A stretch of 26,003 bases of DNA, from NCBI GenBank assembly GCA_002269645.1, contig NIVC01001777.1, forward strand, positions 1 to 26,003, written 5' to 3'. A program made the translations under genes and the position numbers. Within the stretch, counting starts at the first letter, position 1. Every line of letters begins with the position of its first letter. Of the stretch, positions 3,330 through 25,520 are shown piece by piece. Source of the DNA: Macrostomum lignano. Taxonomy: Eukaryota. The notes below the pieces were generated by a model, which was not told the DNA's origin, searched no databases, and saw only the letters and a program-made list of their open reading frames with translations.

Positions 3330-3697
3330 TCTCCCTAGAGCAAGGAAAAGAAGCAACCCCATATATAGCAAGCAACCTTAGAAAGCAAGCATCTTTCTAA
3401 TAGCCCTCCTAATAGCAAATATCTCCTAACAAGCTAGTGCAACAATTTCCTAGTGCAATAATTCCTTTTTGTTTGAGTACAATAATCGTTTTCTAATATA
3501 ATGTAATAATTAATTTTGAATTTTAATATAAACTTTTTGAATAAACTATGCAACAAAACTTTTTTATACATTATACAACACTTATATTTATATGAAGTTT
3601 CTTTCATGATTTACTTGATATATTTTTAATGTTTTAAATAATGATTCTTTCATGTCTTTTATCACACTTCTCTTAGGTCTATATGATATCTCTTTTA
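3330..3697 (-). mobile_element. Left part of an older, decayed copy of the Helitron family, in opposite orientation
   Basis: 3432-3451 AGCTAGTGCAACAATTTCCT is the exact reverse complement of 5205-5224. 3330-3430 holds degenerate reverse-complement units of the 18-bp array (e.g. ATAGCAAGCAACC, AAAGCAAGCATC). The left boundary is uncertain. Confidence 0.55.
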
Positions 3698-4174
3698 TCC
3701 TATATACTAAAAATGAAATGCCTGTGTGTATGTATGTGTGAGATAGATTTCAGAAAAAATGGCTCAACTGATTTTCTTCAAACTTGCACCATTCGATCAG
3801 AAATTTTCCTGGGATGGTACATGCATCTTGGCTAAGAAATTGCTCAGTATTAAAGGGATTAAATATTCGGAAAACATGCTTTTTTGCAAAGGTCAAGCAG
3901 CTCTTTCGACCTGGAATGCATTGTAAGAATGCTAGAGAAAAAACTGACTGACTGAATTTCAATTCTGATAAAGATTGCATCACAACAAGTTGAAAACAGT
4001 GCCGAAGAAATGCACACACAACTTGATTGAAATTGCGTAATCATATTGCTAACTTAAATTGACACTGATACTGGCTGACTGAGAAATTGATTATGTCATA
4101 ACTTTTTGCTCTAACCGATTTGCTATAAGAATTTAATTATAAGGGCCACAATTCATGTTCTCCAATTGACAAGA

Positions 4175-4240
4175 GATAGCATAGATGCGAACAGACTGGA
4201 CTACTAATGCAGCGACCTGGGTTCGAATCTTAGTAGTGCA
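4175..4240 (+). other. tRNA-derived relic (A-box/B-box-like) inside the Helitron
   Basis: TAGCATAGATG (A-box-like) and GGGTTCGAATC (B-box/T-loop). No complete cloverleaf. Confidence 0.4.
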
Positions 4241-4298
4241 AAAAGTTTTTTTTTCAAAAATCTTAAAAACACAAAATGCTTAACACAAAAAAGCACAC

Positions 4299-5165
4299 TG
4301 TCAAACATACAAGAGCCACCATGTCTAACATTAAAAAGCCATTATGTCAAACATTAAAGAGCCACCATGTCCAACATACAAGAGCCACCTTGTCAAACAT
4401 TAAAGTGCCACATTGTGGAACATTAAAGAGCCAGCATGTCGAACATTAAAGAGTCACTATTTCAAACACTAAAGAGCCACCATGTCAAACATAAAAGAGC
4501 CACCATGTCAAACATTAAAGAGACACCATGTCAGACATTAAAAAAACCCCGAATCAAACATTAAAGAGCCACCATGTAGAACATAAAAGAGTCACCATGT
4601 CAAACATTAAAGAGCCACCATGTCAAACATAGAAGAGCCACCATGTCAAACATAAAAGAGCCACCATGTCAAACATAAAAGAGCCACCATGTCAAACATT
4701 AAAGAGACACCATGCCAAAAATAAAAGAGCCACCATGTCAAACATTAAAGAGACACCATGTAGAACATAAAAGAGTCACCATGTCAAACATTAAAGAGCC
4801 ACCATGTCAAACATTAAAGAGCCACCATGTCAAATATAAAAGAGCCACCATTTCGAACATTAAAGAGTCACCCTGTCAAACATTAAAGAGCCACCATGTC
4901 AAACATAAAAGAGCCACCATGTCAAACATAAAAGAGCCACCATGTCAAACATTAAAGAGACACCATGCCAAAAATAAAAGAGCCACCATGTCGAACATTA
5001 AAGAGCCACCATTTCGAACATTAAAGAGCCACCATTTCGAACATTAAAGAGTCACCCTGTCAAACATTAAAGAGCCACCATGTCAAACATAAAAGAGCCA
5101 CCATGCCAAACATAAAAGAGCCACCCTGTCGAACATAAAAGATACACAATTCCAAACTTAAAAGT
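4299..5165. repeat. 23-bp minisatellite (TAAAGAGCCACCATGTCAAACAT), about 37 units, inside the Helitron
   Basis: Directly visible. The ORF at 4712 has a 23-aa period (3 x 23 nt). Confidence 0.95.
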
Positions 5166-5235
5166 AAGCGTCATGCCAATTTTAAAGGAGCCACTATAGA
5201 GCTAAGGAAATTGTTGCACTAGCTACTTATTGTCT

Positions 5236-5792
5236 GGTGGATGCTTACTATTTGGCGATGCTTGCTATCTGGGGGATGCTTGCTATCTGGGGGATGCTTG
5301 CTATCTGGGGGATGCTTGCTATCTGGGAGGGGGGATGCTTGCTATCTGGGGGATGCTTGCTATCTGGGGGATGCTTGCTATCTGGGGATGCTTGCTATCT
5401 GGGGGATGCTTGCTATCTGGGAGGGGGATGCTTGCTATCTGGGGGATGCTTGCTATCTGGGGGATGCTTGCTATCTGAGGGATGCTTGCTATTTGGGGGA
5501 TGCTTGTTATCTGGGAGGGGGATGCTTGCTATCTGGGGGATGCTTGCTATCTGGGGGATGCTTGCTATCTGGGGGATGCTTGCTATCTGAGGGATGCTTG
5601 CTATCTGGGGGATGCTTGCTATCTGTGGGATGCTTGCTATCTGGGGGATGCTTGCTATCTGGGGGATGCTTGCTATTTGGGAGATGCTTGCTATCTGGGG
5701 GATGCTTTCTATCTGGAAGATGCTTGCTATCTTGGGGATGCTTGCTATCTGGGGGATGCTTGCTATCTGGGGGATGCTTGCTATCTTGGGAT
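5236..5792. repeat. 18-bp minisatellite (TGCTATCTGGGGGATGCT), about 30 units, inside the Helitron
   Basis: Directly visible. It gives 6-aa periodic ORFs in all frames (GDACYL, MLAIWG, GGCLLS). Confidence 0.95.
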
Positions 5793-7481: not shown

Positions 7482-7721
7482 ATGGTTGAGCCAATGGTAG
7501 TAGATATTCTAAACGATGTGGAGCAAAACGAAAATGTGCAGCCAGCTGCTGGTGCGATTGTGCAGAATGCCAATCTAGATTTGGACCTGATAGTGTCCAG
7601 CTACACTGGCTATGCCAGGTACCAGCGCCTGATCTACATTGCCGACCATTGTCCTCCACTGCGTGTACAAGCCTTGAGTATGACGCTTAACTATTTGAAA
7701 TCGGAAACTCTGGACGTTCAG
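7482..7721 (+). CDS. GPS1: COP9 signalosome subunit 1 (CSN1/GPS1), exon 1
   Basis: MVEPM..LDLDLIVSSYTGYARYQRLIYIADHCPPLRVQAL resembles CSN1 [34 protein letters not shown]. Donor CAG|GTTGGA, 240 nt, phase 0. Confidence 0.93.
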
Positions 7722-7791
7722 GTTGGAACGCGTGTTTCATATTCGAGTTTTGTTATCTTTTTATATTTTATTTTGGCTACTCATGTAGATA

Positions 7792-8050
7792 GGGGTTGTA
7801 GTCTAGTGTTTAGAGCGTCGGACTCATGATTTGAAGGTCGGGAGTTCGATTCCCAATCCCACTCGGAACAATTTGTGTCCTTGAGCAAGACACTTAACTC
7901 TGCATTGCTTCAGTTCACCCAGCTGTAAAATGGGTGCCAGCATTAGCTGGGGCAGATTGAGGCTGAGTGTGTTTGGCGACCCCCCCCCTTCCAGTTCTTG
8001 AACAGACTGAGCTGTCGGTTGCACATCTGGCCAAATCGAGGCATGTTTAA
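7792..8050 (+). mobile_element. tRNA(Met-like)-headed SINE with CORE-like central domain, in GPS1 intron 1
   Basis: tRNA-like head with A box, CTCATGA loop and AGTTCGATTCC B box. It is followed by TGTGTCCTTGAGCAAGACACTTAAC...CTTCAGTTCACCCAGCTGTAAAATGGG, which resembles the MIR/CORE domain. A second copy lies at 12923. Confidence 0.8.
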
Positions 8051-8159
8051 TCATTAATTGTTATTGTACTTATTACAAATGTACTAAGGTTACTATATTG
8101 TGTGCTTCTAGTCTACTATATTTAATATTTTAATTTTCTTTATTCTGCCCACCGCACAG

Positions 8160-8435
8160 GCGTACGTTGAGTGCCACAGAAAGCTGGTCGCTAGTGCACC
8201 CGCTGGTCAGGCGCCCGCCCAGGACACCCAGTGGGTCGAAGCCACCAGAAAACTGGCCCAGCTAAGCCTGGAAAAATTGGACGTCGAATTGCGCTCGTCA
8301 AAGCAGAGCGCCATCAAAGAGAGCATTCGACGGGGTCAGGACGAGTTGGCTTTTCATTTTCTGCGAATGGGCGACTTAAGTAGCGCATTGAAGAATTACA
8401 GCCGGACTAGGGAGTACTGCACCAATCACCTGCAG
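8160..8435 (+). CDS. GPS1: CSN1/GPS1 exon 2
   Basis: Acceptor CACAG|. [46 protein letters not shown]. Donor CAG|GTTGGA, 276 nt. Confidence 0.95.
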
Positions 8436-8477
8436 GTTGGAGATAATACCTTTGCGATTATATACCTATATGCTTTT

Positions 8478-9090
8478 GTACCTACCTTACGTACTTACTT
8501 TCCTATTTACCTACTTTTCTACGTAGATACCTGCCTACCATCTACTTTCCTAGCTACCTACTTTTCTATCTACCTACTTTTCTACGTAGCTACCTTCCTA
8601 CCTGCCTAACTACCTAACTATATACTATCCTATCTACCCACTCTTATTTACGTAGCTATCTAGTAGCTACATAACTACCTACCTACCTATCTACTCGTAC
8701 TTTCTACCCACTCTTATTTACCTACTTTCCTACATAGATATCTGTCTATCTATCTACCTACCTACCTGCCTACCTTTCTATCTACCTACCAACTGAAGTA
8801 TCCACCCACCTTTCCTGTCCATCTATTTACGAGTACGTGTGTGCCTTCCTACTTACCTGTCTATTTACCTACCTTTCCACTTACCTACCTACTTACCTAC
8901 CTACCTACCTATACCTACTTACCTACCTACCTACCTATACCTACTTACCTACCTACTTATTTACCAAAATTCTGCGTATCTATTTACCCGCCTACCTACC
9001 TAATTACGTTGTAAACTTACCTACCTTTTAACCTACATGTACATTGCTACTTACACTTTCCTACCCAATTATCTACCTAATTAGCTATCT
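8478..9090. repeat. Degenerate (CTAC/TACC)n microsatellite, GPS1 intron 2
   Basis: Runs of ctacctacctac and tacttacc throughout. Confidence 0.85.
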
Positions 9091-9178
9091 CCCATGTTAA
9101 TCTCTCAAATTCTTTTATTTTACTATGTTATTATCATATACATTCTGCATTCTCCAACTTCCCTAAACCCCAATGCAG

Positions 9179-9374
9179 GAATTGGACATGTGCTTAAACG
9201 TCATTAGAATCAGCGTTTACAGTTGCAATTGGCAGCACGCCAAATCGCACATCACCAAAGCCGAAGCTTGCAGCGGAGTTGAAGTTGGCCGGAGCCTCGG
9301 CGCCGGCGGCTACCCTGGCGACGCGTCCGCTTTGACCTCGGCCGCGCCCTCTGCTAAGCCTAAGGAGCGCGAAG
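9179..9374 (+). CDS. GPS1: CSN1/GPS1 exon 3
   Basis: Acceptor TGCAG|. ELDMCLNVIRISVYSCNWQHAKSHITKAE (cf. MCLNVIKVSVYLQNWSHV). Donor AAG|GTGAGC, phase 1. Confidence 0.93.
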
Positions 9375-9439
9375 GTGAGCGTGCGATTAATTATTGTGTA
9401 TTGAATATATCTTGAGCTTCATAGCCTACCTTGATAATT

Positions 9440-10735
9440 TGATAATCATACTGATCAATCAATCAATCGATAATCATACTGATCAATCAATCAATCAATA
9501 ATCATACTGATCAATAAATCATTCGATAATCATACTGATCAAACAATCATTCGATAATCATACTGATCAATCAATCAATCAATAATCATACTGATCAATC
9601 AATCAATCGATAATCATACTGATCAATAAATCATTCGATAATCATACTGATCAATCAATCATGCTGATCAATCAATCAATCGATAATCATACTGATCAAT
9701 CAATCAATCAATAATCATACTGATCAATCAATCAATCGATAATCATGCTGATTAATCAATCGATCGATAATTATACTGATCAATCAATCAATCGATAATC
9801 ATACTGTTCAATCAATCAATCGATAATCATACTGATCAATCAATCAATCAATAATCATACTGATCAATCAATCAATCGATAATCATACTGATCAAACAAT
9901 CAATCGATAATCATACTGATCAATCAATCATGCTGATCAATCAATCAATCGATAATCATACTGATCAATCAATCATGCTGATCAATCAATCAATCGATAA
10001 TCATACTGATCAATAAATCATTCGATAATCATACTGATCAAACAATCATGCTGATCAATCAATCAATCGATAATCATACTGATCAATAAATCATTCGATA
10101 ATCATACTGATCAATCAATCATGCTGATCAATCAATCAATCGATAATCATACTGATCAATCAATCAATCGATAATCATACTGATTAATCAATCGATCGAT
10201 AATTATACTGATCAATCAATCAATCGATAATCATACTGTTCAATCAATCAATCGATAATCATACTGATCAATCAATCAATCAATAATCATACTGATCAAT
10301 CAATCAATCGATAATCATACTGATCAAACAATCAATCGATAATCATACTGATCAAACAATCAATCGATAATTATACTGATCAATCAATCAATCAATAATC
10401 ATACTGATCAAACAATCAATCGATAATCATACTGATCAATCAATCAATCAATAATCATACTGATCAATCAATCGATCGATAATTATACTGATTAATCAAT
10501 CAATCAATAATCATACTGATCAATCAATCAATCGATAATCATACTGATCAAACAATCAATCGATAATCATACTGATCAATCAATCAATCAATAATCATAC
10601 TGATCAATCAATCGATCGATAATCATACTGATCAATCAATCAATCGATAATCATACTGATCAATCAATCATTCGATAATCATACTGATCAATCAATCATT
10701 CGATACTCATACTGATCATTGAATAATCATATGAT
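9440..10735. repeat. 28-bp minisatellite (GATAATCATACTGATCAATCAATCAATC), about 45 units, GPS1 intron 3
   Basis: Directly visible, with an (AATC)n core and occasional short units. Confidence 0.95.
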
Positions 10736-10784
10736 AATCAGCAGACGTGTTTTAATGATGATGATGTCTCCTACTCTCCCGCAG

Positions 10785-11068
10785 GTGTTCAGCGCAAGCT
10801 GGCATTCGTACAGGCGGCATCGGGCCTAGTTGAACTCGCGGACTCCCGCTATCGCACCGCCGCGCGCCAATTCCTAGCCGTACAATTCGACTTTTTCAAT
10901 TGTCCCGAGCTTCTATCGCCGGCTAATATTGCCACTTATGCCAGCCTGTGCGCTCTGGCCACCTTTGACAGGCAGGACATGCGCAGGCTGGTCATGTCTA
11001 GCGCCAATTTTCGTCAATTCCTCGAAGTTGAACCGGCAGTTCGCGATGTTGTAACTAGCTTTCATCAG
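10785..11068 (+). CDS. GPS1: CSN1/GPS1 exon 4 (not in the supplied ORF track)
   Basis: Acceptor CGCAG|. KLAFVQAASGLVELADSRYRTAARQF..PELLSPANIATYASLCALATFDRQDM..FRQFLEVEPAVRD. Donor CAG|GTGAAG. Phases agree with both neighbours. Confidence 0.95.
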
Positions 11069-11124
11069 GTGAAGATGTTTTGAATTGTTAGATAAACTGT
11101 CAACCATTTGAAACCTAACCTAAA

Positions 11125-11830
11125 CCTAGAAGCAAGATGGTTGCCACTAGAAGCAGATTGGTTGCAATCAGAAGCAGATTGGTTGCAATCAGAAGCAGGA
11201 TGGTTGCCACTAGAAGCAGATTGGTTGCAATCAGAAGCAAATTGGTTGCAATCAGAAGTAGGATGGTTGCCACTAGAAGCAGATTGGTTGCAATCAGAAG
11301 CAGGATGGTTGCCACTAGAAGAAGATTGGTTGCAATCAGAAGCAGGATGGTTGCCACTAGAAGCAGATTGGTTGCAATCAGAAGCAGATTGGTTGCAATC
11401 AGAAGCAGGATGGTTGCCACTAGAAGCAGATTGGTTGCAATCAGAAGTAGGATGGTTGCCACTAGAAGCAGATTGGTTGCAATCAGAAGCAGGATGGTTG
11501 CCACTAGAAGCAGATTGGTTGCAATCAGAAGCAGATTGGTTGCAATCAGAAGCAGGATGGTTGCCACTAGAAGCAGATTGGTTGCAATCAGAAGCAGGAT
11601 GGTTGCCACTAGAAGCAGATTGGTTGCAATCAGAAGCAGATTGGTTGCAATCAGAAGCAGGATGGTTGCCACTAGAAGCAGATTGGTTGCAATCAGAAGC
11701 AGATTGGTTGCAATCAGAAGCAGGATGGTTGCCACTAGAAGCAGATTGGTTGCAATCAGAAGCAGATTGGTTGCAATCAGAAGCAGGATGGTTGCCACTA
11801 GAAGCAGATTGGTTGCAATCAGAAGCAGGT
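11125..11830. repeat. 21-bp two-variant minisatellite (GAAGCAGATTGGTTGCAATCA / GAAGCAGGATGGTTGCCACTA), about 33 units, GPS1 intron 4
   Basis: Directly visible, with 7-aa periodic ORFs in three frames. Confidence 0.95.
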
Positions 11831-11882
11831 TGTTCCTATTGATTTTAATTGTTCGCTTTGTTCTTTGAAAATGCCACTCCAG

Positions 11883-12398
11883 GCTAACTACGCAGCCTGC
11901 CTAGCTGGCATGGAGCGCCTGAAGCCGACTTTACTCCTAGACCTCTACCTTGGCTCGCACGTGGAATCGCTATTCTCAGAGATTAGAAAACGCGCCTTAA
12001 CCCAATACTTCAGCCCGTATGTTAGCGCCGATCTGGATAAAATGGCATCAACCTTTGGTACAAGCGTGCCAGCGCTGGAAGACGAATTAATGCGACTAAT
12101 ATTGGACAAGCGCATAGCCGCCCGTATCGATAGCAACAAGCGCCTATTGGTTGCTAAGCAGGCGGACCTGCGCAGTGCGGTATTCGAATCCGCTCTACAA
12201 GCTTGTCGCGATTGGAAGCGCAGAAATTCGGCCGCTATTCTACATCTGGCTGTTAGCAAAGCTAATTTATGCGTCACCGAGTCTAATCCCGCTAGCGGAG
12301 CTGCTTCCGCTGCCGCTTCCGCTGGCGGTGCTGCCTCCGCTGGCGCTGGCGCCGCGGCAACAGCCGCTGCTGGCGCATGCGATGATGCAATGCAGTGA
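11883..12398 (+). CDS. GPS1: CSN1/GPS1 exon 5 (PCI domain and C-terminus)
   Basis: Acceptor TCCAG|. LLLDLYLGSHV..IRKRALTQYFSPYVSADLDKMA..ALEDELMRLIL..ARIDS. TGA at 12396. The spliced CDS is 1512 nt (503 aa). Confidence 0.95.
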   Translation, partial: ANYAACLAGMERLKPTLLLDLYLGSHVESLFSEIRKRALTQYFSPYVSADLDKMASTFGTSVPALEDELMRLILDKRIAARIDSNKRLLVAKQADLRSAVFESALQACRDWKRRNSAAILHLAVSKANLCVTESNPASGAASAAASAGGAASAGAGAAATAAAGACDDAMQ

Positions 12399-12408
12399 TT
12401 TTTTATAT

Positions 12409-12414
12409 AATAAA
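12409..12414 (+). terminator. Candidate polyadenylation signal of GPS1
   Basis: AATAAA begins 11 nt after the stop codon. Confidence 0.5.
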
Positions 12415-12515
12415 ATAACTTGAAAGTTTTCCTATTTCTACTGTTTGGAGTAGAGACTAAAGAAAATGATAGCTATTTTTCTCTGTAGAAGATAAAAATC
12501 TACTGGAATATGAAT

Positions 12516-12804
12516 CATACATGCGCAACCTCCAAAATTCGGTCGGCCATGCGACTTAGTTTTAACAAAAATGCGACGTAGTTTTTGGCCAAAAATGCGA
12601 CTTAAATGTAAAAAAAACCCTAAAGCAAAATTAACGCAACTTTGGGTAAACGGCAGGAGTAACTATGACTGTCTTATAAATCAAAATGCTTCGTCAGCTA
12701 CTTAGTAGTACTACTTTGGTATTTTTTCGGGTGGGCATTTTTGCGACTTCCTTGATTGGCCGCCAAATCGGTCGGCCGGATCGGCCGACTGTTGCGCATG
12801 TATG
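12516..12804. mobile_element. 289-bp MITE (hAT/P-like), 14-bp TIR
   Basis: CATACATGCGCAAC ... GTTGCGCATGTATG. Flanks AATATGAAT and AATATGAT form an 8-bp TSD with one indel. Confidence 0.75.
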
Positions 12805-12922
12805 AATATGATTAATTAATTTACATCAGATAATGTTCACCTAAGTCTAACTCATGAAATAATGTTCTCAAAGGCCTATAGCGTTATTAAGCATCTGGGC
12901 TATTAAAAGGGAGTTAAAAAGG

Positions 12923-13030
12923 GCGCCGGACTCACGACTTGAAGGTAGGGGGTTCGATTCCCGATCCCATTGGAACGATTTGTTTCTTTGAGCAAGACAC
13001 TTAACTTTGCATTGCTTCAGTTCGCCCATT
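12923..13030 (+). mobile_element. Truncated second copy of the tRNA/CORE SINE
   Basis: GGACTCACGACTTGAAGGT..GTTCGATTCCCGATCCC..TTGAGCAAGACACTTAACTTTGCATTGCTTCAGTTC matches 7820-7920. Confidence 0.8.
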
Positions 13031-13664
13031 GGCAGGTAGGGTAGGGCAGGTTTAATCAGTTATTAATATTATTATTATGGGCTATTAATTATGAATAATT
13101 AATTATAATCATTAATAGCGGTTGAAAAATTATTTTCAACTAGTTAAATTTCATCTCACCTGGTCAAATAAGCCAATCTATTGTAATATGACATATTCCT
13201 GTATATGCTAACCGATTCTCTCGCAAGTAGTATTGAGAAAATATGTGAAATAATCCTTTGTTGAAAATGAAATCGGCAACTTTTTTTCGATAAATGGTTA
13301 TAAACAATTGCTTTGACTTTCTTAGCGTTGTGTTTGTGTTTTTTGACCTTTCTAAAAGCTAATTTGACTGCCTTGTCTGTCATGATCCAATTGTTGATCT
13401 TTGTTGTTATTAATAATTTTGTTTAAATAAAAACGAAAAGGATGAAACTATAGTACCGGTCTCTCATAGCTCTGTGCTTGGCTTTTCTGTTTATTACCGC
13501 ATTGAAATTTCTTGCTGACTTTATATATAATTACGAAGAAGCCCTTAAGGTACCGTAAAACTTGAGTTTGAGACATATACACACATCCTACATGCTAGCA
13601 ATTGAGTTATGTAAAAGACAACCCATTTTGGCTTAAATTCTTTGTTTCTTGTGTTTTGCAATAG

Positions 13665-14110
13665 TTTTAGTTCTTTCCTTTCCACTTCCCACTCTCCCCT
13701 CTCCCCTCTCCCTCTCCCTCTACCCTCTCCTTCCTCACTCTCTTCCTCTCTCCTCTCCCTTTCTCCTCTCCTCGCTCTCCCTCTGTCCTCTCCTTATTCT
13801 CTCCTCTCCTCCCTCTCCTCTCTTCACTCTCCCCTGTCTCCTTTCCTTTTCTCCTTAGTCTCTCCTTATCTCCCTATCCTCACTTCCTTTCTCACCTTCA
13901 CCACTCTACCTCTTTCTTTCACTCTCTTCTCCGTCTTCCCCATTTTCAATTTCCCTCTCTTCCTTCTCTTTCGCCTCCCACTTTGTAATCGTTCTCTAAT
14001 TATCATCTCCATCATATTTCTCTCATCCTTTATGCCCCATCTCTCTTTCATTCCATTTTCCCAGACTCTCCCTCATTCGCTTTCTTCCCCATAGCCGCTT
14101 TTCTTACCGT
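13665..14110 (+). repeat. About 450-bp CT-rich low-complexity tract upstream of WDFY3
   Basis: Strongly pyrimidine-biased on the + strand. Confidence 0.85.
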
Positions 14111-14288
14111 GTGCTTTTTCTCTATAAAATTTGTTTTTATTTATTTCTGCAAAAGCATTCCAATTATTGGTTACAAAAGAACGCTCAACACGCTAGAAAA
14201 GCTGGAGTTATTAATTAATAATAGCTCACTAGCGAAAGTTTAGTGCGCTTACTTGCTAACTAATTAGCAATCTAAATTAACTAGTTCA

Positions 14289-14567
14289 ATGAGCTTCTTC
14301 TCCAAGCTTGTCGGCGGAGGCGGCGGCAACAGCGGCTCCCAATCGAGTTCCAGTCGCGGGCCGCCCTCGGCCGCTGATCAAGCCTTCGCTCGCTACGCCG
14401 CCGCTGCGGAAGGTGCCAGGGGAGGCGTCGGCGGCGGCGCCACCGGAAGCGCCGGTCAAGGCGCAGGGTTCTCCCCTATTGAGGATCACAGTTTAGCAAT
14501 TGCCCATCTAAGGAAACTGTTTGCCGACGTCAAGGCTAACGCTAGTCGAATGGGACCAGGGGAACAG
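14289..14567 (+). CDS. WDFY3: WDFY3/ALFY (blue cheese) exon 1
   Basis: ..SPIEDHSLAIAHLRKLF.. resembles SPQDNALGLMHLRRLF. Donor CAG|GTAAAA, 279 nt. Confidence 0.88.
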
Positions 14568-14644
14568 GTAAAATTTCTCTATTTTATGATTTTTATGCTT
14601 TACCTTTCAGTAACTGCTTGACTTTGCCAAATCACCGTAACGTC

Positions 14645-14955
14645 TTAGAATCGCCCTTTTAGGATTGCCCTCATAAAATCGCCCTATTAGAATCGCCCTT
14701 TTAGAATCGCTTTTTAGAATCGCCCTCCTTGAGAGAATCGCCCTCTCATAATCGCCCTTGAGAATCGACCTCTAGAACTGCCTTCTTGACCTATTAGAAT
14801 TGCCCTTGAGGATCGCCTTCAAGAATCACTCTCGAGAATCTCCCTCTTATTATCGCCCTTGAGAATCGTTCTCTAGAATCATCCTAAAATCATCTTAAAA
14901 TCGCCCTCGAGAATAGACTTTCTGTGAATCGCCTTCTAAGAATCACTCTCTATAG
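14645..14955. repeat. Degenerate 12-13-bp tandem repeat (AGAATCGCCCT...), WDFY3 intron 1
   Basis: Repeated agaatcgccc / aatcgcc units. Confidence 0.8.
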
Positions 14956-15053
14956 AACCAGTTTCCAAAAATTTCTGATCAAATTCAATACCGAAAATAT
15001 TGCCTTAGGGAACAGTTGTCAAACACCAAAGCCACCATTATTTCACTATACAG

Positions 15054-15871
15054 GCCAGCCGTCTATACGTGATGCTGCCAGTGTTCTGCAAAGTGTACAG
15101 CTCTCTGCCTAGCTCGGAGATGTCAGCCAGTTTCCCAGACGTTGGCCAATTCTGCAGTCACGCCTCTAAACTAATGGTAACTGAGATTAAAAAGCGGGCC
15201 AGCAATCAGTCGACTGTGAACGCGTCAGCCGCTATAGTTGACTTCTTAGAAGCCGATGCACTTGACGAATCTAAATCTGGCGGTTGGATGCTATTGACAA
15301 CGTTGAATTTGCTGGCTACTGGTGGCAAAAATTTAATTGAAGCAATGACCGCTTGCTCGTTGCCGTCTACTTTAGTTAAGTGTCTCTATTTGTTCTTCGA
15401 TTTGCCGCCTCTACCAGAAGCAACCGCTTGTTCGCAACAACAACAACTAACACCATGCGAGCAAAGAGCACTTCTTCAGCGTACGTTTACTCAACTATTA
15501 GTGAGACTGTGTTCTCACACTGAGCCAGCCGAAGAATTAGTACAGAAAAACGATCTCAGCCTATTATTCGGAGCAGTATGCAGTCCTTGCGCTAATCACA
15601 ATGTAATCTGGAGGAAAGCGGCTGCCGATGTGCTTACAACTCTAAGTCGTTACGGTTTGACTTACACCGTTCGACAGTACATACACAAAGAGGCGTGTAT
15701 TAAGCAGTGCGTTAATGGTATTATGAAAGCCGCAGGTTCGCCGTTGGACACAGTGGAAATGCTAGTTACAATTTGCTGCTTTTTAAAAGACGCATCAGAG
15801 ACTAATCAGAATTTACTCGACGATTTCTGGCACGCTAATGGCTATCAAAGGATTACGCAGATTATACTCAA
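15054..15871 (+). CDS. WDFY3: WDFY3 exon 2
   Basis: Acceptor ACAG|. LYVMLPVF..LMVTEIKKRASNQST..GWMLLTTLNLLA..PSTLVKCLYLFFDLP..EELVQKNDLSLLF..CFLKDAS..LLDDF. Donor AA|GTAAGT, phase 2. Confidence 0.96.
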
Positions 15872-16232
15872 GTAAGTTTTTTAGTTTATTACACCTTTGC
15901 TTTGGTTTTGGTTGTGCTTATATCCAACAGGACAAATGTTTTTTAATCAACATATTCAAGTTTACCATTCTAGAAATAAATAAATGATTTATCGTCTGCT
16001 CAACTTTTTTGTTAATTAGCTTATGTTATTAAATATTAAAAAGAAATGATATTATTGGTGCGACGAGATATACGCACAGTAAGATGTACTAAAGCTTAAA
16101 GGCTTTTCAGGTCTGGCGTATCAGCAGTAAGGAGAAGGAGGGGATTATGCTATTTTAGCGCCTGCTTTGTTCAGTACGGCGTAGTTAGGTTGTTTGTGTG
16201 TCACGCGGCTAAAGTATTACGTTGCTTTGATT

Positions 16233-16607
16233 CATAGATAAAGTATACATAGATTCCACCCCTGCCCAGAATGTACACACGCTCGTGTCCAAACTTTGAC
16301 CACCATAAAACTCACCGTGCTCTCATTGGCTGGCGCGAAAGCCTTCCTTTCAACACCTTCGATTTCATTCCCTCACCCCTTCCACACAAGAAAGCTTTAT
16401 AACTTTAATGCGCGGAACGAAAGGATGTCTTACCAGTTTCAACAGTTAAAGCGGAGATAATAGAAAAGCGGAGTTGGGGGAATGTACACACGTGGACTCA
16501 ATGTGCATAGCGTGGCCCAGCCAATAGGAGCGCAGTGAATAAAGTGATGGTCACAATTTAGACACTCCGCGGGGGTAGGGGTGGAATCTATGTATACTTT
16601 ATCTATG
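16233..16607. mobile_element. 375-bp MITE, 31-bp perfect TIR, perfect 8-bp TSD (P-element/hAT-like)
   Basis: TIR CATAGATAAAGTATACATAGATTCCACCCCT. TSD CTTTGATT at 16225-16232 and 16608-16615. Confidence 0.9.
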
Positions 16608-16719
16608 CTTTGATTTGGGGTTGGTGGATGGTGGACTGGGGCTTGTTTGCTGATTTTATCACTTTGCCTCGCGCGCTCATGTGTTTGGCTGAGTCAATTA
16701 ACTTAATCAATACTCTAGT

Positions 16720-17000
16720 CTAGGCAGAAAACCCTAACCCCTCTGCCCCAACCCCCAAAACTTTTACCCTTTGCCATTAACTTCGCCAGCCAATCAGAAC
16801 GCGCCAACGCTTTTTAGACAGTTTTTTTAGACCAAGCCAACCCTAGAGTGAAGCGGCCCGCGGGGTGCGCGCGATTTAGAATAGCCAAACAATTAAATCA
16901 GCCAGTCGCTCTACCCCTCTACCCCCCCCCCCACCTAACTTTGCACCCAACCGCAGCGCATTATAAAATCCGGTCCGCCCGGGGCCGCCTTGTACTTTCC
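16720..17000 (+). promoter_or_regulatory. Candidate promoter of the nested LSM14 gene
   Basis: CCAAT at 16790-16794, GC-rich stretch, TATAAAA at 16962-16968 (about 150 nt before the ATG), C-rich tracts. Confidence 0.45.
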
Positions 17001-17120
17001 CTATTATTATTCTGCGCTGCCTTGCTCTCCCTGCCAATCTATTCTCTGTATTTGATCGTTTATTTCTATTTATTTTTGGAAACTTTTAAATCATCGAAGA
17101 GATTAACAAGGCACAAAGAC

Positions 17121-18854
17121 ATGACTCCACCGCCGCAAGTTCCCTATATTGGTTCGACAATCTCTCTGCTGTCCAAGGCCAGCATTCGATACGAAGGCTT
17201 TCTTTACACTATCGATCAGAAAGAATCATCCGTAGCCCTATCCCACGTCAAAGTGTTTGGTACAGAGGATCGCCAATGCGACCGTCCAGTGCCGCCGTCC
17301 GACGAGATCTTCGAATTTATAATATTTCGCGCTTCGGACATCACCGAATTAAAGGTTATCGACACTCCTCCAGTGCGCTCTGTGCCAGATCCGGCTATTA
17401 TCCGGGCGCAGAACAAGCCTCCGCCGCAGTCGTCCGATCAACAGCAGCAGTCTAGTACCGCCGCAACTGCAGAGGCTAATGCATCGGTGAAGAATTTTCT
17501 ATCGCAGGCTGGCTCTAGCGCAGCTGGAGGCCGCGCCTCGGCCTTGGCCGTTGGCGGTAGCGGCGGATCAGGAGGCGGCTCTAGCACTGTTCGATTGATG
17601 GGCAACTCTAACGGCAGCAGTCGCAATCAACATTCGTCGCAGCAGCAGCAGCACCAGTCTAGGGGCCAGCAGCAGCCTCTAATGCAAGGCCAGCAGCCAT
17701 CCCAACAGCAGCAGCAGCAGATACCGCCTCGTCGTTATAATAACAATCAACAGCAGGATAATAATAAACCATTCTCTGGCGACTATCAACAGTCTAGGTC
17801 ATACTACAACAATCGTAGGAACAATGCCGATTTCTTTGACATGCCGCCGTCTGGCAACAATAGCGGCGGCTATCGAAGCGGAGGCCGTATGGGCCGGTCT
17901 GATGGCAACAACGGCTACGGCTATTGTCCGCAGGGTCCGCCGCCTCTGCAATCGCTGCAGCCGATGCCGCCGCCTCCGCCGCATTATCGCAACGCCTACG
18001 GCGGTGGCCCAGGTGGCTACTCCGGCTATCATCGTCATCAGCAGCAGCATCACCCCGCCGCTGGCGGCTACGGCTATCCGCTGGCACCGCCGATAATGTC
18101 TATGCCGCCAATGTCTTCGCAGCGGCGCTACGGCGGTCGGCCAGTTATGCACTTTCGGCGCTATCCCGGCGGACCCGGAATGGGTGGCGGCGGCGGCGGC
18201 GGCGGTGGCCGGATGGGCGGTGGCCGCCCCGGTCCATCGCATCATCAACTGGGCGGCTGGAATTCCGGTGGCAACGATCGACGTCAGCAGCAGCAGCAGC
18301 AGCAGCAGCATCACCAGCAGCAGCATCAGCACCGGCAGCATCTGGTTGATCCGATTCCTGCTCGATTCACTGCCGACTACGATTTCGAAACTGCCAATGC
18401 CGAGATGGAGGCCGAACTAGCCAAGCTGGTGCTCAACAGCGGCGGAGGTGGTTCTGCCGGGGACAACTCTACAGCGACGGCGGACGCGCCTGCGACCTCC
18501 GACAATGCTGACACTGACGTCGATTCGAAGGCTCACCTGGCCGGCACCGTGGCGGCTATGGAGTCGCTGCTGCGCCACGCCCACGCCGGCTATGACAAGG
18601 AGAAAAGCTTCTTTGACGACATCAGCCGAGTTGAAGCCGATGCCGCTGCCGATGCTGCTAATAACTCTAGCGGCTGCGGCGCCGTCAGCTCGGCGCCAGG
18701 GCCTAACAACGCCGGCGGCCCTCGAAAGGAAACATCGATTCGTCAAAATGCGCTCAACAAGGAGACGTTTGGCCTAGTTGGCGGCCGAATGCGTCGCGGT
18801 ATTAGCAATCGTTTCTATGGCAACCGTGGCCCGTATCGCCGAGCTGTTGTGTAG
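17121..18854 (+). CDS. LSM14: LSM14/RAP55/Trailer hitch/Scd6-family P-body protein, intronless, 577 aa
   Basis: N-terminal Lsm domain [54 protein letters not shown]-box variant [12 protein letters not shown] box [11 protein letters not shown] box LNKETFG, Arg/Gly-rich C-terminus. Confidence 0.95.
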
Positions 18855-19645
18855 ACGGGATTTGGACACACCACAATGTTTTCTGTCGTTGACAATTTCT
18901 GATCGTCTCGTAAAGCTAAATCAAACAAAGTATGAAAGTCGCGCGTCATTTATTATTACCCTAATTCCTGGCCAATATGCTGTTTTTTCGCTAACCGAGT
19001 TCTTTGTCGCATTCTTCCCCTTTGTTGATTTATTTCTGCTGCTGCTGCTGAAGCCAGCCAGGTGTTTTTGCACCTCCCCCTTATCAAATTCGACTCCGAC
19101 TGCTCGCAGCTTTTGTCATATTGTTCGGCTCCCTTTTGAAGTTGCTTTTTTATAAAGAGAGACTTGCTTTGCCGCCAGTTCTAAAAGTATGTTTGATACT
19201 AATTGTAATAGCAGGCTTGTTTTTTCGGTCCTTTGATGACAAACAACTCGTCCCGTTTTCTGCGCGATCGTGCGTTTTTGTGACAACTACTTTTCTCTCG
19301 AGCCGCTTTCCTCCAAGGTGTCAGTCTGCACTCCCCCTTATTTTTTTTGTTTATTTGTCGCGCTACAAGTGCGCTATCAGAACCCGCTGCTTTGTCGCTA
19401 TTATCTGTACTAGTTTAGCAAGATTTTCCCGCGGCCAGTTTAAAAGCTATCGCTAGCGCCACTTTTGAAGTTTCTGCACCGTCATTTTCCTTCACGCTAT
19501 TGCCCGATATTGATATTGATGAATTTTGCTATCCCCGTTCAATTTAGTCGCACCGCTGCACAAGATGCAAACGTTTCAAATATTCTGCTATACGATTTCT
19601 TCCAAGGAAAAAAGAATATTATTATTGATTATTATTTAAGCTAGC

Positions 19646-19651
19646 AATAAA
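19646..19651 (+). terminator. Candidate poly(A) signal of LSM14 (inside WDFY3 intron 2)
   Basis: AATAAA about 790 nt downstream of the LSM14 stop, after a U-rich UTR-like stretch. Confidence 0.45.
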
Positions 19652-20334
19652 ATCCGAAAGTAATGACGCCTCATTTCATCATTAAATTGCCTTCATTTTA
19701 GCCTTTTTTAGCTTATTTAGACTTGCCTTCGTTTGACTGGTTGATTGATTAAGCCTGGGAACAATTAACATGCTTCTTTTCTTAGTCTATGACGGATCTC
19801 TGGCACATCAAATAGACAACTTTTGCAGAATCGTAAAATAAATTTCAATTCTGCCCCTATGATGCATTTAGATCTGAAAGAGATTGTGCCATAGACAAAA
19901 TCAGTTCTTCACACGCAGAAGCGAATAAGAATGAAAATGGCAATGACGTTCCACTGCCGCGATTAGGTGTTTGGCTTTTGGCCATAGACAAACGCGACTG
20001 ATATGTACACGCTGGATTAGCTGGTGCTATAGCTAAGTGGAGACTTAGAGTTAATCAATTTTTTTCTATGGTCAAAAAACTAAACTCGATTTACGACCTC
20101 GGATATTCTCTGATACCATGAAAGTTCTGCAAATCGGGATTAAGATGCACTTACTGGTTGAGCATAAATAAATATATTAAACAGATTAATTTAAATTGCT
20201 TGCTCCAAGACTCGTTTCACTTGGGTAAAATTTTTACTAACAAATTAAATATTATAAAAGTCAACGAACGATTAAAGCTCATTTTTGAATGTTTATTAAT
20301 TTCCCGCATCCCAAATCTTCTAAATCATGTACAG

Positions 20335-20501
20335 CTTAGAAGAGATGGACGTACAAGACTGGGAGACTGCAACTGATAATTTAATCTGCCTGGCCGCCTC
20401 TCTAGCCACCTGCGGCTGCGTGCAACTCAAGCCTAGCGACACCGTGGCCAATTCTATCTGTCAGATACCGAACTTTACTGTGCCGCAGCCTGCTGGCAAA
20501 G
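20335..20501 (+). CDS. WDFY3: WDFY3 exon 3
   Basis: Acceptor ACAG|. NLICLAASLATCG..LKP..PNFTVPQPAGKG (cf. PGFAVPQPAGKG). Donor AAG|GTACGC. Phase matches exon 2. Confidence 0.93.
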
Positions 20502-20559
20502 GTACGCTGACTCACCATCTTTTACCTCCGGCAGTAGCTTTTACCTCTGTCTTACCCTG

Positions 20560-21120
20560 TCACAGCCTCCGTCTTTACGCTGTCTCACCCTCTGGCTTTA
20601 CCCTCTGTCGCACCCTCTGGCTTTACCCTCTGTCCCAGCCTCTGGCTTTTATACCCTCTGTCCCAGCCTCTGGCTTTACCCTCTGTCCCAGCCTCTGGCT
20701 TTACCCTCTGTCCCAGCCTCTGGCTTTCATACCCTCTGTCCCAGCCTCTGGCTTTACCCTCTGTCCCAGCCTCTGGCTTTCATACCCTCTGTCCCACTCT
20801 CCGACTTTACCCTCTGTCCCAGCCTCTGGCTTTCATACCCTCTGTCCCACTCTCCGACTTTACCCTCTGTCCCAGCCTCTGGCTTTCATACCCTCTGTCC
20901 CACTCTCCGACTTTACCCTCTGTCCCAGCCTCTGGCTTTCATACCCTCTGTCCCAGCCTCTGGCTTTACCCTCTGTCCCAGCCTCTGGCTTTCATACCCT
21001 CTGTCCCAGCCTCTGGCTTTACCCTCTGTCCCAGCCTCTGGCTTTCATACCCTCTGTCCCACTCTCCGACTTTACCCTCTGTCCCACCCTCCGGCTTTAC
21101 CCTCCGTCCCACCCTCCGTT
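20560..21120. repeat. 25/28-bp minisatellite (CCCTCTGTCCCAGCCTCTGGCTTTA), WDFY3 intron 3
   Basis: Directly visible. Variants include +CAT and CCCACTCTCCGAC. Confidence 0.92.
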
Positions 21121-21357
21121 TTTTCCTTCTGTCCTACCCTCCGTCTTCTCCACTCTATATCCCTTTCCTCTCTAGCCTTAAACCTCCTTCCCGTGCCCTC
21201 TTTCTCACCCTGTTTCCCCTCTTTCTTACCCTCTGTCTCTACCCTTTTTACTCTCTCTATCTCTCTGAAGAATTAAATTTCTTCAATAAACATTTAACTA
21301 ATAAGCGACTGAAGGATTTATACTATTATATAAAAGATAAAAACTCATCAATTGCAG

Positions 21358-21759: not shown

Positions 21760-22235
21760 AGTTTATAAGTTTATTGAGTCTGGCTGTATTTTTATTCAGT
21801 CTTTATTAAGTCTAGCTATAGTGTTTATAGAGTCTAGATATAGTTTTATTGAATCTAGCTATGGGTTTATAGAGTCTAGCTATTGTGTTTATTAAGCCTA
21901 GCTATAGTGTTTATTAAGCCTAGCTATAGTGTTTATTGAGTCTTGATATAGATTTATTGAGTCTAGATACAGTGTTTATTGAGTCTAGATATAGTGTTTA
22001 TTGAATCTAGCTATGGGTTTATTGAGTCTAGCTATAGTGTTTATTGAATCTAGCTATAGTGTTTATTGAATCTAGCTATAGTGTTTATTGAATCTAGCTA
22101 TAGTGTTTATTGAGTCTAGCTATAGTGTTTATTGAGTCCAGCTATAGGTTTATCAAGTGCAGCTACATGTGTATTGACTGTAGCTATAGGTTTATCGAGT
22201 CTAGCTAATAGGTTTACTGAGTCCAGCTACATGAA
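21760..22235. repeat. 22-bp minisatellite (TCTAGCTATAGTGTTTATTGAG), WDFY3 intron 4
   Basis: Directly visible, degenerate at both ends. Confidence 0.9.
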
Positions 22236-22871: not shown

Positions 22872-23790
22872 ATATAGTACAGTTTAGAGCTTATAGTGAA
22901 TTTTTGAGCTTATAGTGAAGTTTCGAGCTTATAGTACAGTTTCCAGCTTATAGTATCGTTTCCAGTTTATAGTAGTTTCGAGCTTATAGTGAATTTTGAG
23001 CTTATAGTGCAATTTTGAGCTTATAGTGAAGTTTCGAGCTTGTAGTGAAGTTTTGAGCTTATAGTACAGTTTCCAGCTTATAGTATCGTTTCGAGCTTAT
23101 AGTACAGTTCGAGCTTATAGTACAGTTTCCAGCTTATAGTATCGTTTCGAGCTTATAGTACAGTTCGAGCTTATAGTACAGTTTCGAGCTTATAGTACAT
23201 TTTCGAGAATATAGTTAAGTTTCGAGCTCATAGTGAAGTTTTGAGCTTATAGTGAATTTTGAGCTTATAGTGAAGTTTCGAGCTTTTAGTACAGTTTCCA
23301 GCTTATAGTACATTTTCGAGAATATAGTTAAGTTTCGAGCTTATAGTGAAGTTTCGAGCTTATAGTATAGTTTCGAGCTTATAATAAAGTTTCGAGCTTA
23401 TAGTACAGTTCGAGCTTATAGTACAGTTTCGAGCTTATAGTACAGTTTCGAGCTTATAGTACAGTTCGAGCTTATAGTACAGTTCGAGCTTATAGTACAG
23501 TTTCGAGCTTATAGTACAGTTCGAGCTTATAGTACAGTTCGAGCTTATAGTACAGTTTCGAGCTTATAGTACAGTTCGAGCTTATAGTACAGTTCGAGCT
23601 TATAGTACAGTTTCGAGCTTATAGTACAGTTCGAGCTTATAGTACAGTTCGAGCTTATAGTACAGTTCGAGCTTATAGTACAGTTTCGAGCTTATAATGA
23701 AGTTTAGAGCCTATAGAACAGTTTCGAGCTTATAGTGAATTTTCGAGCTTATAGTACAGTTTAGAGCTTATAGTACAGTTTCGAGCTTTT
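22872..23790. repeat. 18/19-bp minisatellite (GAGCTTATAGTACAGTTTC), about 48 units, WDFY3 intron 5
   Basis: Directly visible, most homogeneous from about 23400 to 23690. Confidence 0.95.
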
Positions 23791-25039: not shown

Positions 25040-25520
25040 GTCCATTGAGACCCTTGACTCCATTGACCCATCGACCCTATTTGACCTCATTGACACCTTG
25101 ACCCGATTTGACCTCATTGACACCTTGACCTTATTTGACCTCATTGACACCTTGACCCTATTTAAACTCATTGACACCTTGACCCTATTTGACCTCATTG
25201 ACACCTTGACCCTATTTGACCTCATTGACACCTTGGCCTTATTTGACCTCATTAACACCTTGACCTTATTTGACCTCATTGACACCTTGACCCTATTTGA
25301 ACTCATTGACACCTTGACCCTATTTGAACTCATTGACACCTTGGCCTTATTTGACCTCATTAACACCTTGACCTTATTTGACCTCATTGACACCTTGACC
25401 CTATTTGAACTCATTGACACCTTGACCCTATTTGAACTCATTGACACCTTGAAACTATTTGACCTCATTGACACTTTGACCCTATTTGACCTTATTGACA
25501 CCTTGACCCTTGACTCTTGA
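25040..25520. repeat. 27-bp minisatellite (TTGACCTCATTGACACCTTGACCCTAT), about 17 units, WDFY3 intron 7
   Basis: Directly visible, with 9-aa periodic ORFs on both strands. Confidence 0.95.

Follow-up and report, generated by a model that had tools for sequence, protein, structure and literature searches.

A single-exon LSM14-family gene nested on the same strand in an intron of WDFY3/Alfy in the flatworm Macrostomum lignano

Human F8A1 is an intronless gene nested in intron 22 of F8, and nesting on the strand of the host is probably the rarer of the two orientations. A count of 50 nested human retrocopies gave 28 on the opposite strand and 22 on the same strand (PMC7290577). Like F8A1 and the nested retrocopies of that survey, the locus described here, in a 26,003-nucleotide stretch of M. 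lignano DNA (the window), has a complete intronless gene, apparently functional in its own right, lying within one intron across which the exons of the host are spliced. What sets it apart is its place on the strand of its host and its great age, with neither an identifiable parent nor scars of retroposition.

The LSM14A and LSM14B (RAP55) proteins of vertebrates, Trailer hitch (Tral) of Drosophila, CAR-1 of C. elegans and Scd6 of yeast carry an N-terminal LSm domain (PF12701) and DFDF, FFD and TFG motifs, and the nested gene encodes an LSm domain, a candidate DFDF motif, an FFD box and a TFG box in this canonical order. It differs from these relatives in a coding sequence free of introns, a very long Q/G/N-rich linker of about 310 aa, the near absence of the RGG-rich tail, and the residues ISRVEADA after the FFD box, where ISCE/D is usual. 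Among the matches listed, no animal LSM14 protein other than its M. lignano paralogue, PAA77123.1, exceeds about 66% identity to it in the LSm domain.

Among flatworms, RNAi of lsm14 (Smp_129960) in S. mansoni blocks germ-cell differentiation (PMC7817839), and spermatid elongation in Schmidtea mediterranea requires Smed-rap55 (PMC5544531). Both genes are of the same family and phylum as the nested LSM14; the germline roles are theirs, the M. lignano gene being known from its sequence. Members of the family bind DDX6/Me31B and 4E-T, gather in P-bodies or germ granules and repress translation. By analogy, the nested LSM14 would repress translation and serve as a scaffold of RNP granules, recruiting DDX6 by way of its FDF/TFG region, and the role of LSM14 in flatworms may lie mainly in germ-cell differentiation. 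The germline candidate genes listed for M. lignano include an LSM14 transcript, 3152 nt long (PMC5173321, supplement), which could derive from either paralogue. As the source of the published transcript RNA1509_244, the two are not told apart by their Pfam LSm scores, 98.1 bits for the nested LSM14 and 96.4 bits for PAA77123.1.

The nested gene and its host intron

The LSM14 coding sequence occupies positions 17121–18854 of the plus strand as a single ATG-to-stop exon of 577 codons plus stop, recognized by its open reading frame, by Pfam and in the NCBI gene table. In 500 shuffles of the same composition, no open reading frame exceeded 256 codons. The Scd6-like LSm domain, residues 8–81 (17142–17363), matches PF12701 over the full length of the model with 98.1 bits (E 3e-28), against a cutoff of 30 bits. 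A long, disordered linker rich in Q, G and N separates it from the DFDF motif (18375–18407), the FFD box (18591–18626) and the TFG box, NKETFGL (18756–18776). In an alignment that spans one rotifer, one bivalve, one fish and arthropods, all three C-terminal motifs match the other LSM14 sequences column for column, and the columns of the FFD and TFG boxes are invariant. For the DFDF motif, the aligned counterpart in seven further LSM14 sequences reads D[FY]DFE..N. The Pfam FDF model (PF09532) gave no match in the nested protein even at E ≤ 10, while a rotifer control scored 31.7 bits; neither M. lignano paralogue reaches this model. The original prediction of a 577-residue LSM14 with all the family motifs stands for the reading frame, the LSm domain and the FFD and TFG boxes; the DFDF motif is supported by the alignment and not by the FDF profile. 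Open reading frames on the minus strand within the coding sequence have no family match and are by-products of its GC-rich, repetitive codons. We conclude with good, though not complete, confidence that the nested gene is a genuine, functional member of the LSM14 (RAP55/Tral/CAR-1) family, with one coding exon, on the same strand as WDFY3/Alfy and within an ancient intron of that gene. The absence of introns applies to the coding sequence, and an intron in the 5′-UTR is possible.

The flanking exons are those of WDFY3/Alfy: across 645 aa they are 44–50% identical to named WDFY3 sequences from many animals and phyla. Coding exon 1 (14289–14567; MSFFSKLVGGG to GPGEQ) is open in frame, begins at the same ATG as the NCBI WDFY3 gene call and is followed by a donor GT at 14568. 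Coding exon 2 (15054–15871) lies between the acceptor ACAG|GCC and the donor AA|GTAAGT and ends in phase 2; it is 50–57% identical to WDFY3 orthologues and 100% identical to residues 488–760 of UniProt A0A1I8H410. Coding exon 3 (20335–20502; LEEMDVQDW to PQPAGK) follows TACAG and ends at the donor AAG|GTACG. Between exons 2 and 3 lies the host intron, intron 2, a canonical GT..AG intron of 4463 bp (15872–20334), and all of these features are on the plus strand. The WDFY3 exon in the window matches Arm_4 (PF23295; E 3.8e-13), and Arm_4, PH_BEACH, Beach and WD40 domains are among the Pfam matches listed for the 3636-aa NCBI product, whose C-terminus, the place of the FYVE domain in WDFY3 proteins, falls outside the window. 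That exons 2 and 3 join in phase across the intron, as had been predicted, was borne out on reading the junction (QIILN|LEEMD): WDFY3 orthologues align continuously across it with no residue missing. The same junction, 15871|20335, is used by the independent UniProt model A0A1I8H410, from an older assembly.

The WDFY3 gene of the spider Larinioides has an intron at the homologous codon, likewise in phase 2, and among the genes called at that locus there is no LSM14. Judged by this comparison, the host intron is older than the LSM14 insertion, and its position and phase should be no younger than the ancestor of protostomes. Rfam and tRNA scans of intron 2 found nothing.

Two copies of the locus and transcription of the nested gene

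A near-identical public counterpart of the window is contig NIVC01001530.1 of M. lignano assembly GCA_002269645.1. The two are separate copies, collinear over about 14.5 kb with 99.2–99.4% identity; a MITE insertion of 383 bp, small indels and scattered substitutions set them apart. The insertion consists of a 375-bp hAT-like element with 35-nt terminal inverted repeats (16233–16607, no strand assigned), together with its 8-bp target-site duplication, CTTTGATT; it is absent from NIVC01001530.1. The nested LSM14 is present in both copies, and the alignment is continuous across both intron boundaries. Within the LSM14 coding sequence the copies differ by one synonymous change in 1734 nt. From the TATA box described below to about position 20045 they are almost invariant, and a cluster of about 20 changes falls in the intron sequence further downstream (20046–20334).

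With its highly repetitive genome, duplicated in part (PMC5730564), M. lignano is a species in which an LSM14 segment might have been misjoined into the WDFY3 intron during assembly. Misassembly is unlikely, since both copies carry the nested gene; they share the arrangement, yet differ by the MITE, substitutions and indels, and no large repeat lies at the junctions of intron 2. By these comparisons, misassembly as the source of the nesting appears already largely refuted, and we regard it as extremely improbable.

For the locus on NIVC01001530.1, the GenBank annotation has three separate genes, namely CSN1, WDFY3 and the nested gene, and the NCBI gene table places the last, a single-exon gene of 577 aa, within the 3636-aa BEACH-domain gene on the same strand. 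Together with the reading frame, this upholds the original prediction of an intact, intronless, same-strand LSM14 in the second coding intron of WDFY3. The annotation was made from an RNA-seq-guided transcriptome (PMC5730564), so that the gene call implies a transcript. Being genuine, conserved and present in public annotation, the nested single-exon gene counts as an ordinary nested gene and not as a new kind of system. What is new here is the second paralogue, PAA77123.1, intronless and outside WDFY3, the dN/dS figures, and the ancient host intron.

The predicted promoter-like motifs and poly(A) signal are present as motif matches: a putative core promoter on the plus strand (16790–16968), with CCAAT at 16790 and TATAAAA at 16962, and, 3′ of the stop codon, a first AATAAA at 19646–19651, with others at 19837 and 20167. 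We propose that LSM14 would be transcribed from its own promoter, with TATA and CCAAT boxes about 160–330 nt 5′ of the ATG, to its own poly(A) site, and that it would be neither an exon of WDFY3 nor a trans-spliced, operon-like unit.

Host-dependent expression has to be weighed against this proposal. In M. lignano about 30–39% of genes are trans-spliced and operons number in the thousands (PMC8629364; PMC5730564), and LSM14 lies on the strand of WDFY3; a promoterless LSM14 might be cut from the WDFY3 pre-mRNA by SL trans-splicing and polyadenylation, as an intronic operon, and so be co-transcribed and co-regulated with its host. The reported trans-splice acceptor motif [T/C]TNCAG has zero occurrences in 16600–17125, upstream of the LSM14 ATG, though processing from the host pre-mRNA might occur without this consensus. 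The TATA and CCAAT motif matches stand at plausible distances from the ATG, and the contrast between the near-invariant segment, from the TATA box to about 20045, and the variable intron downstream is as expected for an independent unit. We consider host-dependent expression improbable, and transcription from a promoter of its own remains our preferred reading.

A chimeric WDFY3–LSM14 exon was also considered. An open extension of 91 codons precedes the ATG in the window, and in NIVC01001530.1 it is broken by a stop codon after an 8-bp indel. Four AG dinucleotides are in phase, none of them in a CAG or polypyrimidine context, and such an exon is unlikely.

A second paralogue and the origin of the intronless state

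The original prediction had called for a search for other LSM14 paralogues and their intron status. This search found PAA77123.1 (BOX15_Mlig003010g1; 471 aa), encoded elsewhere in M. lignano by a single exon of 1416 nt. No WDFY3 exons lie within 10 kb on either side of it, and its neighbours are a GPCR-like open reading frame and a UBE4-like gene. Among 1.84 billion representative proteins, it is by far the closest to the nested LSM14 (E 2.6e-55; the next match, 1.5e-44). This exhaustive search of representatives complemented a full-length protein search that was swamped by low-complexity words, with at least 26 matches; a search with the LSm domain alone gave three word candidates and no match. 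Of the ten top matches looked up from the representative-protein search, none was from a flatworm.

The two M. lignano proteins have LSm domains that are 78% identical, share lineage-specific motifs and are each encoded by a single coding exon. They differ in their C-terminal regions, which are only about 40% identical, and in that PAA77123.1 is not nested in WDFY3. The LSm domain of the nested LSM14 is the more conservative and that of PAA77123.1 the less like outgroups, in a panel biased towards the nested copy. In the conserved blocks, dN between the paralogues is 0.12–0.14 and dS is above 1.4, that is, saturated. Of 153 third codon positions 85 differ, against 20 first and 17 second positions. 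By these figures, both paralogues are under strong purifying selection, and M. lignano has, as judged from their sequences, at least two old, divergent, intronless LSM14 genes. The divergence from PAA77123.1, with the single synonymous difference between the two copies of the locus, supports the earlier view of the nested gene as old and functional.

The statement that metazoan LSM14 genes are multi-exon held in the one animal checked, the rotifer Rotaria, whose LSM14 has at least five coding exons; M. lignano genes have about five introns on average (PMC5730564). Since PAA77123.1 is also single-exon, the intronless state probably arose before the two paralogues diverged, and the older locus could be either of them. 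The earlier description of a retroposed or relocated copy is sustained for an intronless and old gene, and not for derivation from a multi-exon parent: no such parental LSM14 came to light in M. lignano, where the sole other LSM14 found is PAA77123.1. A third, intron-bearing LSM14 may exist in this species.

The absence of an A-tail and of a target-site duplication, likewise noted earlier, was confirmed. From 18855 to 20334 there is no run of eight or more A's and no 20-mer with at least 14 A's (70%), and the best local alignment of the upstream and downstream halves of the intron has a score of 31, while shuffles gave up to 32. Two direct repeats flanking LSM14, D6 and D9, were tried as a degenerate target-site duplication or LTR and rejected, because they are out of register and their gapped local alignment is no better than that of shuffles. 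With no A-tail, no direct repeat and no multi-exon parent, it is from the lack of introns alone that we infer retroposition, which is plausible.

An LSM14 mRNA would have been retroposed, or the gene stripped of all its introns, in macrostomids ahead of the divergence of the two paralogues. Of these, one would later have landed in intron 2 of WDFY3, or would already have sat there; its position would most likely be a neutral accident, an insertion into a permissive intron.

Retroposition competes here with stepwise intron loss in an ancestral macrostomid LSM14, followed by segmental duplication or transposon-mediated capture into the WDFY3 intron. Such a route would fit the lack of an A-tail and target-site duplication, the plausible upstream promoter, which would be missing from a fresh retrocopy, and the activity of mobile DNA at this very site, as seen in the polymorphic MITE. 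Yet a single reverse-transcription event is the simplest way to lose all of at least five introns, and the hallmarks of retroposition are expected to have been erased at this age because dS is saturated. DNA-level duplication has left no trace beside the two paralogues, whose 5′ flanks and 3′ flanks show no similarity above that of shuffles, and a fragment of a non-LTR element bearing a reverse transcriptase adjoins the locus in another copy. We regard the stepwise route as possible but doubtful.

A postulated coupling with WDFY3 and practical consequences

It had been called conceivable that the nesting couples the assembly of RNP granules to their clearance. Selection might have kept LSM14 in place if its transcription or polyadenylation modulated WDFY3, by premature termination to a truncated WDFY3 or by mutual exclusion, so linking granule assembly to selective autophagy. 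A gene nested on the same strand can subject its host to interference or to polyadenylation within the intron, according to Kaer et al. (2011; cited in PMC7290577), and intron 2 contains three AATAAA signals. Against such coupling stand a paralogue placed outside WDFY3, a homologous spider intron with no LSM14, and an arrangement known from two 99.3%-identical copies of one locus. The idea found no support here, and we consider it highly improbable. A more elaborate form is also very hard to credit: use of the LSM14 promoter or of its poly(A) sites within intron 2 would decide whether WDFY3 transcripts are full-length or end prematurely, or read-through from the host would silence LSM14, so that germline RNP-granule assembly and Alfy-dependent clearance of aggregates or granules were tuned against each other at a single locus. 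A milder version, to which we likewise give little credence, would have an “orphan” retrogene displace the multi-exon LSM14 inherited by macrostomid flatworms and afterwards become duplicated. The proposed tie of granule assembly to granule autophagy would be interesting if true.

The finding matters little beyond annotation. It does illustrate cleanly the insertion of a gene into an intron that, in position and phase, appears at least as old as the protostome ancestor. M. lignano, with its two old intronless LSM14 paralogues, is a transgenic flatworm model for work on stem cells and the germline, and the arrangement is relevant to RNAi and knock-outs of LSM14 or WDFY3: edits or insertions in intron 2 of WDFY3 could damage LSM14, and a probe for one paralogue may also detect the other. 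The polymorphic MITE in the region upstream of LSM14 could act as a natural test of promoter sensitivity.

The nested gene and the age of its host intron

The ORF at 17121-18854 (+) encodes a 577-aa protein, and in 500 same-composition shuffles the longest ORF never exceeded 256 codons. The product matches, residue for residue, the gene called on NIVC01001530.1 (GCA_002269645.1, Mlig_3_7), a GenBank contig carrying a near-identical counterpart of the locus. Pfam matches an Scd6-like Sm domain over the full domain length (98 bits), and the DFDF, FFD-box and TFG-box align with their counterparts in rotifer, bivalve, fish and arthropod LSM14. The Pfam FDF HMM was matched neither by this protein nor by PAA77123.1, a second M. 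lignano LSM14 paralogue. The original prediction of a full LSM14 ORF with family motifs inside the host intron is thus upheld.

The flanking ORFs are those of WDFY3/Alfy. Concatenated (645 aa), they show 44-50% identity from end to end with proteins named WDFY3 in molluscs, arachnids, insects and vertebrates, and one WDFY3 exon in the window matches the Alfy-type Arm_4 domain (Pfam). Exon 1 lies at 14289-14567, exon 2 at 15054-15871 and exon 3 at 20335-20502. Exons 2 and 3 had been proposed to join in phase over 15872-20334, and they do: the 15871/20335 junction is GT..AG, reads ..QIILN/LEEMD.. in the protein, and is also used in UniProt A0A1I8H410, an older-assembly model. WDFY3 orthologues align over it with zero residues missing, and so the 4463-bp intron has no WDFY3 exon. 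Compared with window 11883-20536, A0A1I8H410 is itself a chimeric model, in which the CSN1 C-terminus, a non-LTR reverse-transcriptase fragment and the WDFY3 N-terminus are joined and which runs on into WDFY3 intron 3. The reverse-transcriptase fragment is missing from the window; the locus copy behind that model has a retroelement separating CSN1 from WDFY3.

WDFY3 of the spider Larinioides sclopetarius is interrupted at the homologous codon, again by a phase-2 intron (..FLL AG/GTAAT ... TTCAG/G CTA GAA..). This counterpart spans 1.8 kb (18742-20578 of the spider locus), and the spider WDFY3 locus has no LSM14 call anywhere inside it. It follows that LSM14 entered a pre-existing intron. The following WDFY3 intron (after ..PQPAGK in the window and ..PHSSG in the spider) also coincides, and both shared positions are very old.

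Two copies of the locus and the probable transcription unit

In the NCBI gene table for NIVC01001530.1, three genes share a strand. CSN1, with RPN7 and PCI domains, corresponds to window 7482-12398; the second gene begins at window 14289 and encodes a 3636-aa BEACH protein, and nested in it is the third, which has one exon and a 577-aa product. Annotation of the M. lignano assembly was derived from an RNA-seq-guided transcriptome (PMC5730564); the nested gene was therefore publicly annotated before, and the call presumably has a transcript behind it. Nesting of intronless genes within introns is a familiar phenomenon. The observation is correct but ordinary, and what is added here is a second intronless paralogue, evidence that the host intron is old, and a polymorphic MITE a short way upstream of LSM14. 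Neither M. lignano LSM14 nor its nesting in WDFY3 is discussed in the literature searched.

The window and NIVC01001530.1 align collinearly at 99.2-99.4% identity. They differ by substitutions dispersed along the alignment, by small indels and by a single insertion of 383 bp in the window, which therefore represents a further copy, haplotype or assembly of this locus. In the DV1 genome, non-repetitive duplicated blocks with identities of 95% or more add up to about 180 Mb (PMC5730564). Misassembly, which had been named as an outcome that would undo the nesting, is very unlikely, since two non-identical copies show the same arrangement. The LSM14 coding sequences differ at one synonymous site, and about 16923-20045 holds just three further differences; small as these numbers are, they agree with a constrained transcription unit. 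The final ~290 bp of the host intron, beside the exon 3 acceptor (20046-20334), form a local divergence hot spot, with a cluster of about 20 of the intron's ~30 changes.

The promoter-like motifs and poly(A) signal of the original prediction are present at motif level, as a CCAAT box at 16790 and a TATA box at 16962, upstream of the ATG, and AATAAA at 19646, 19837 and 20167. The LSM14 frame is open for 91 codons 5′ of the ATG (16848-17120). This extension was rejected as coding, because the same frame in NIVC01001530.1 has an 8-bp indel and then a stop codon; the segment would be promoter and 5′ UTR. Further upstream, at 16233-16607 and 0.5-0.9 kb from the start codon, lies a 375-bp hAT-like MITE with 35-nt terminal inverted repeats that are 97% complementary and an 8-bp target-site duplication CTTTGATT. 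It is predicted to fold into a hairpin (-153 kcal/mol) and contains CCAAT-like boxes at 16322 (minus) and 16520 (plus). NIVC01001530.1 has a clean empty site at this position, which makes the MITE an insertion polymorphism.

RAP55, Tral, CAR-1 and Scd6 repress translation and build RNP granules, with their LSm domain and FDF/TFG region serving to bring in DDX6, 4E-T and other partners. The nested LSM14 would be transcribed independently, with a role typical of the family. Host-dependent expression through trans-splicing is unlikely: [T/C]TNCAG, the acceptor motif of M. lignano trans-splicing (PMC8629364), does not occur in 16600-17125, upstream of the nested ATG. Since LSM14 lies on the same strand, host transcripts must read through its poly(A) signals, and interference by such read-through is documented at other nested genes, in the part of PMC7290577 that cites Kaer et al. 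2011. That nesting is kept by a selected coupling of LSM14 with WDFY3 is also improbable; no support was found for the granule-autophagy link that had been offered as a speculation. Flatworm members of the family have germline roles: RNAi of S. mansoni lsm14 blocks germ-cell differentiation (PMC7817839), and spermatid elongation needs Smed-rap55 (PMC5544531). A published list of M. lignano germline candidates includes an LSM14 transcript of 3152 nt, RNA1509_244, which may stem from either paralogue (PMC5173321 supplement).

A second intronless paralogue and the origin of the nested copy

A search for further LSM14 genes and their introns yielded PAA77123.1 (471 aa), which is likewise one uninterrupted coding exon, at 10001-11416 of its own locus. 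No WDFY3 exons lie within 10 kb on either side; its neighbours are a GPCR-like ORF upstream (2965-4317, minus) and a UBE4/Ufd2-like gene downstream (from about 13343). A CTTCAG trans-splice-like acceptor precedes its ATG by 208 nt. PAA77123.1 is by far the nearest relative of the nested protein in a set of 1.84 billion cluster representatives (E 2.6e-55; next match 1.5e-44). The LSm domains are 78% identical and the C-terminal motif regions about 40%, and both proteins carry lineage-specific strings, GRPVMHFRR and SFFDDISRV among them; the two are sister paralogues. The LSm domain is probably the more conservative in the nested copy, which scores nearer the outgroups in 172/174 comparisons with a panel picked using the window protein and biased towards it.

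In a comparison of 153 conserved codons, dN came to 0.12-0.14 and dS was at saturation; differences fall at 85 of the 153 third positions, 20 first and 17 second. The duplication is therefore old and both paralogues are under purifying selection.

The nested gene had been described as an old, functional retroposed or relocated copy. Its age and selection stand; descent from a multi-exon parent is doubtful. As both paralogues are intronless, the simplest history places intron absence before their split, and "retrocopy of a multi-exon parent" would then be the wrong label for the nested gene in particular. Rotaria LSM14 has at least five coding exons, and an average M. lignano gene has about five introns (PMC5730564). 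As had been noted of the A-tail and target-site duplication, no A-rich tract remains as a hallmark of retroposition, and no direct repeat above shuffle level flanks the gene; nor do its flanks resemble those of PAA77123.1. Stepwise intron loss or DNA-level relocation is an alternative to retroposition.

Other features of the window

A weak tRNA-like match at 7792-7861 (+) (Rfam RF00005; 34.6 bits, gathering score 29), about where the first CSN1 coding ORF (7482-7829) ends, received no tRNA call from ARAGORN and may be a tRNA-derived SINE remnant or pseudogene. Among the long non-coding stretches, eight contain large minisatellite arrays, and these eight are mostly CSN1 and WDFY3 introns: 4299-5142, 5233-5790, 9441-10718, 11128-11832, 20557-21147, 21798-22229, 22873-23788 and 25042-25510. 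WDFY3 intron 2, the LSM14 host, has none. The units are 18-63 nt long, in up to about 50 copies, and the arrays yield long spurious ORFs on both strands and vary between the window and NIVC01001530.1.
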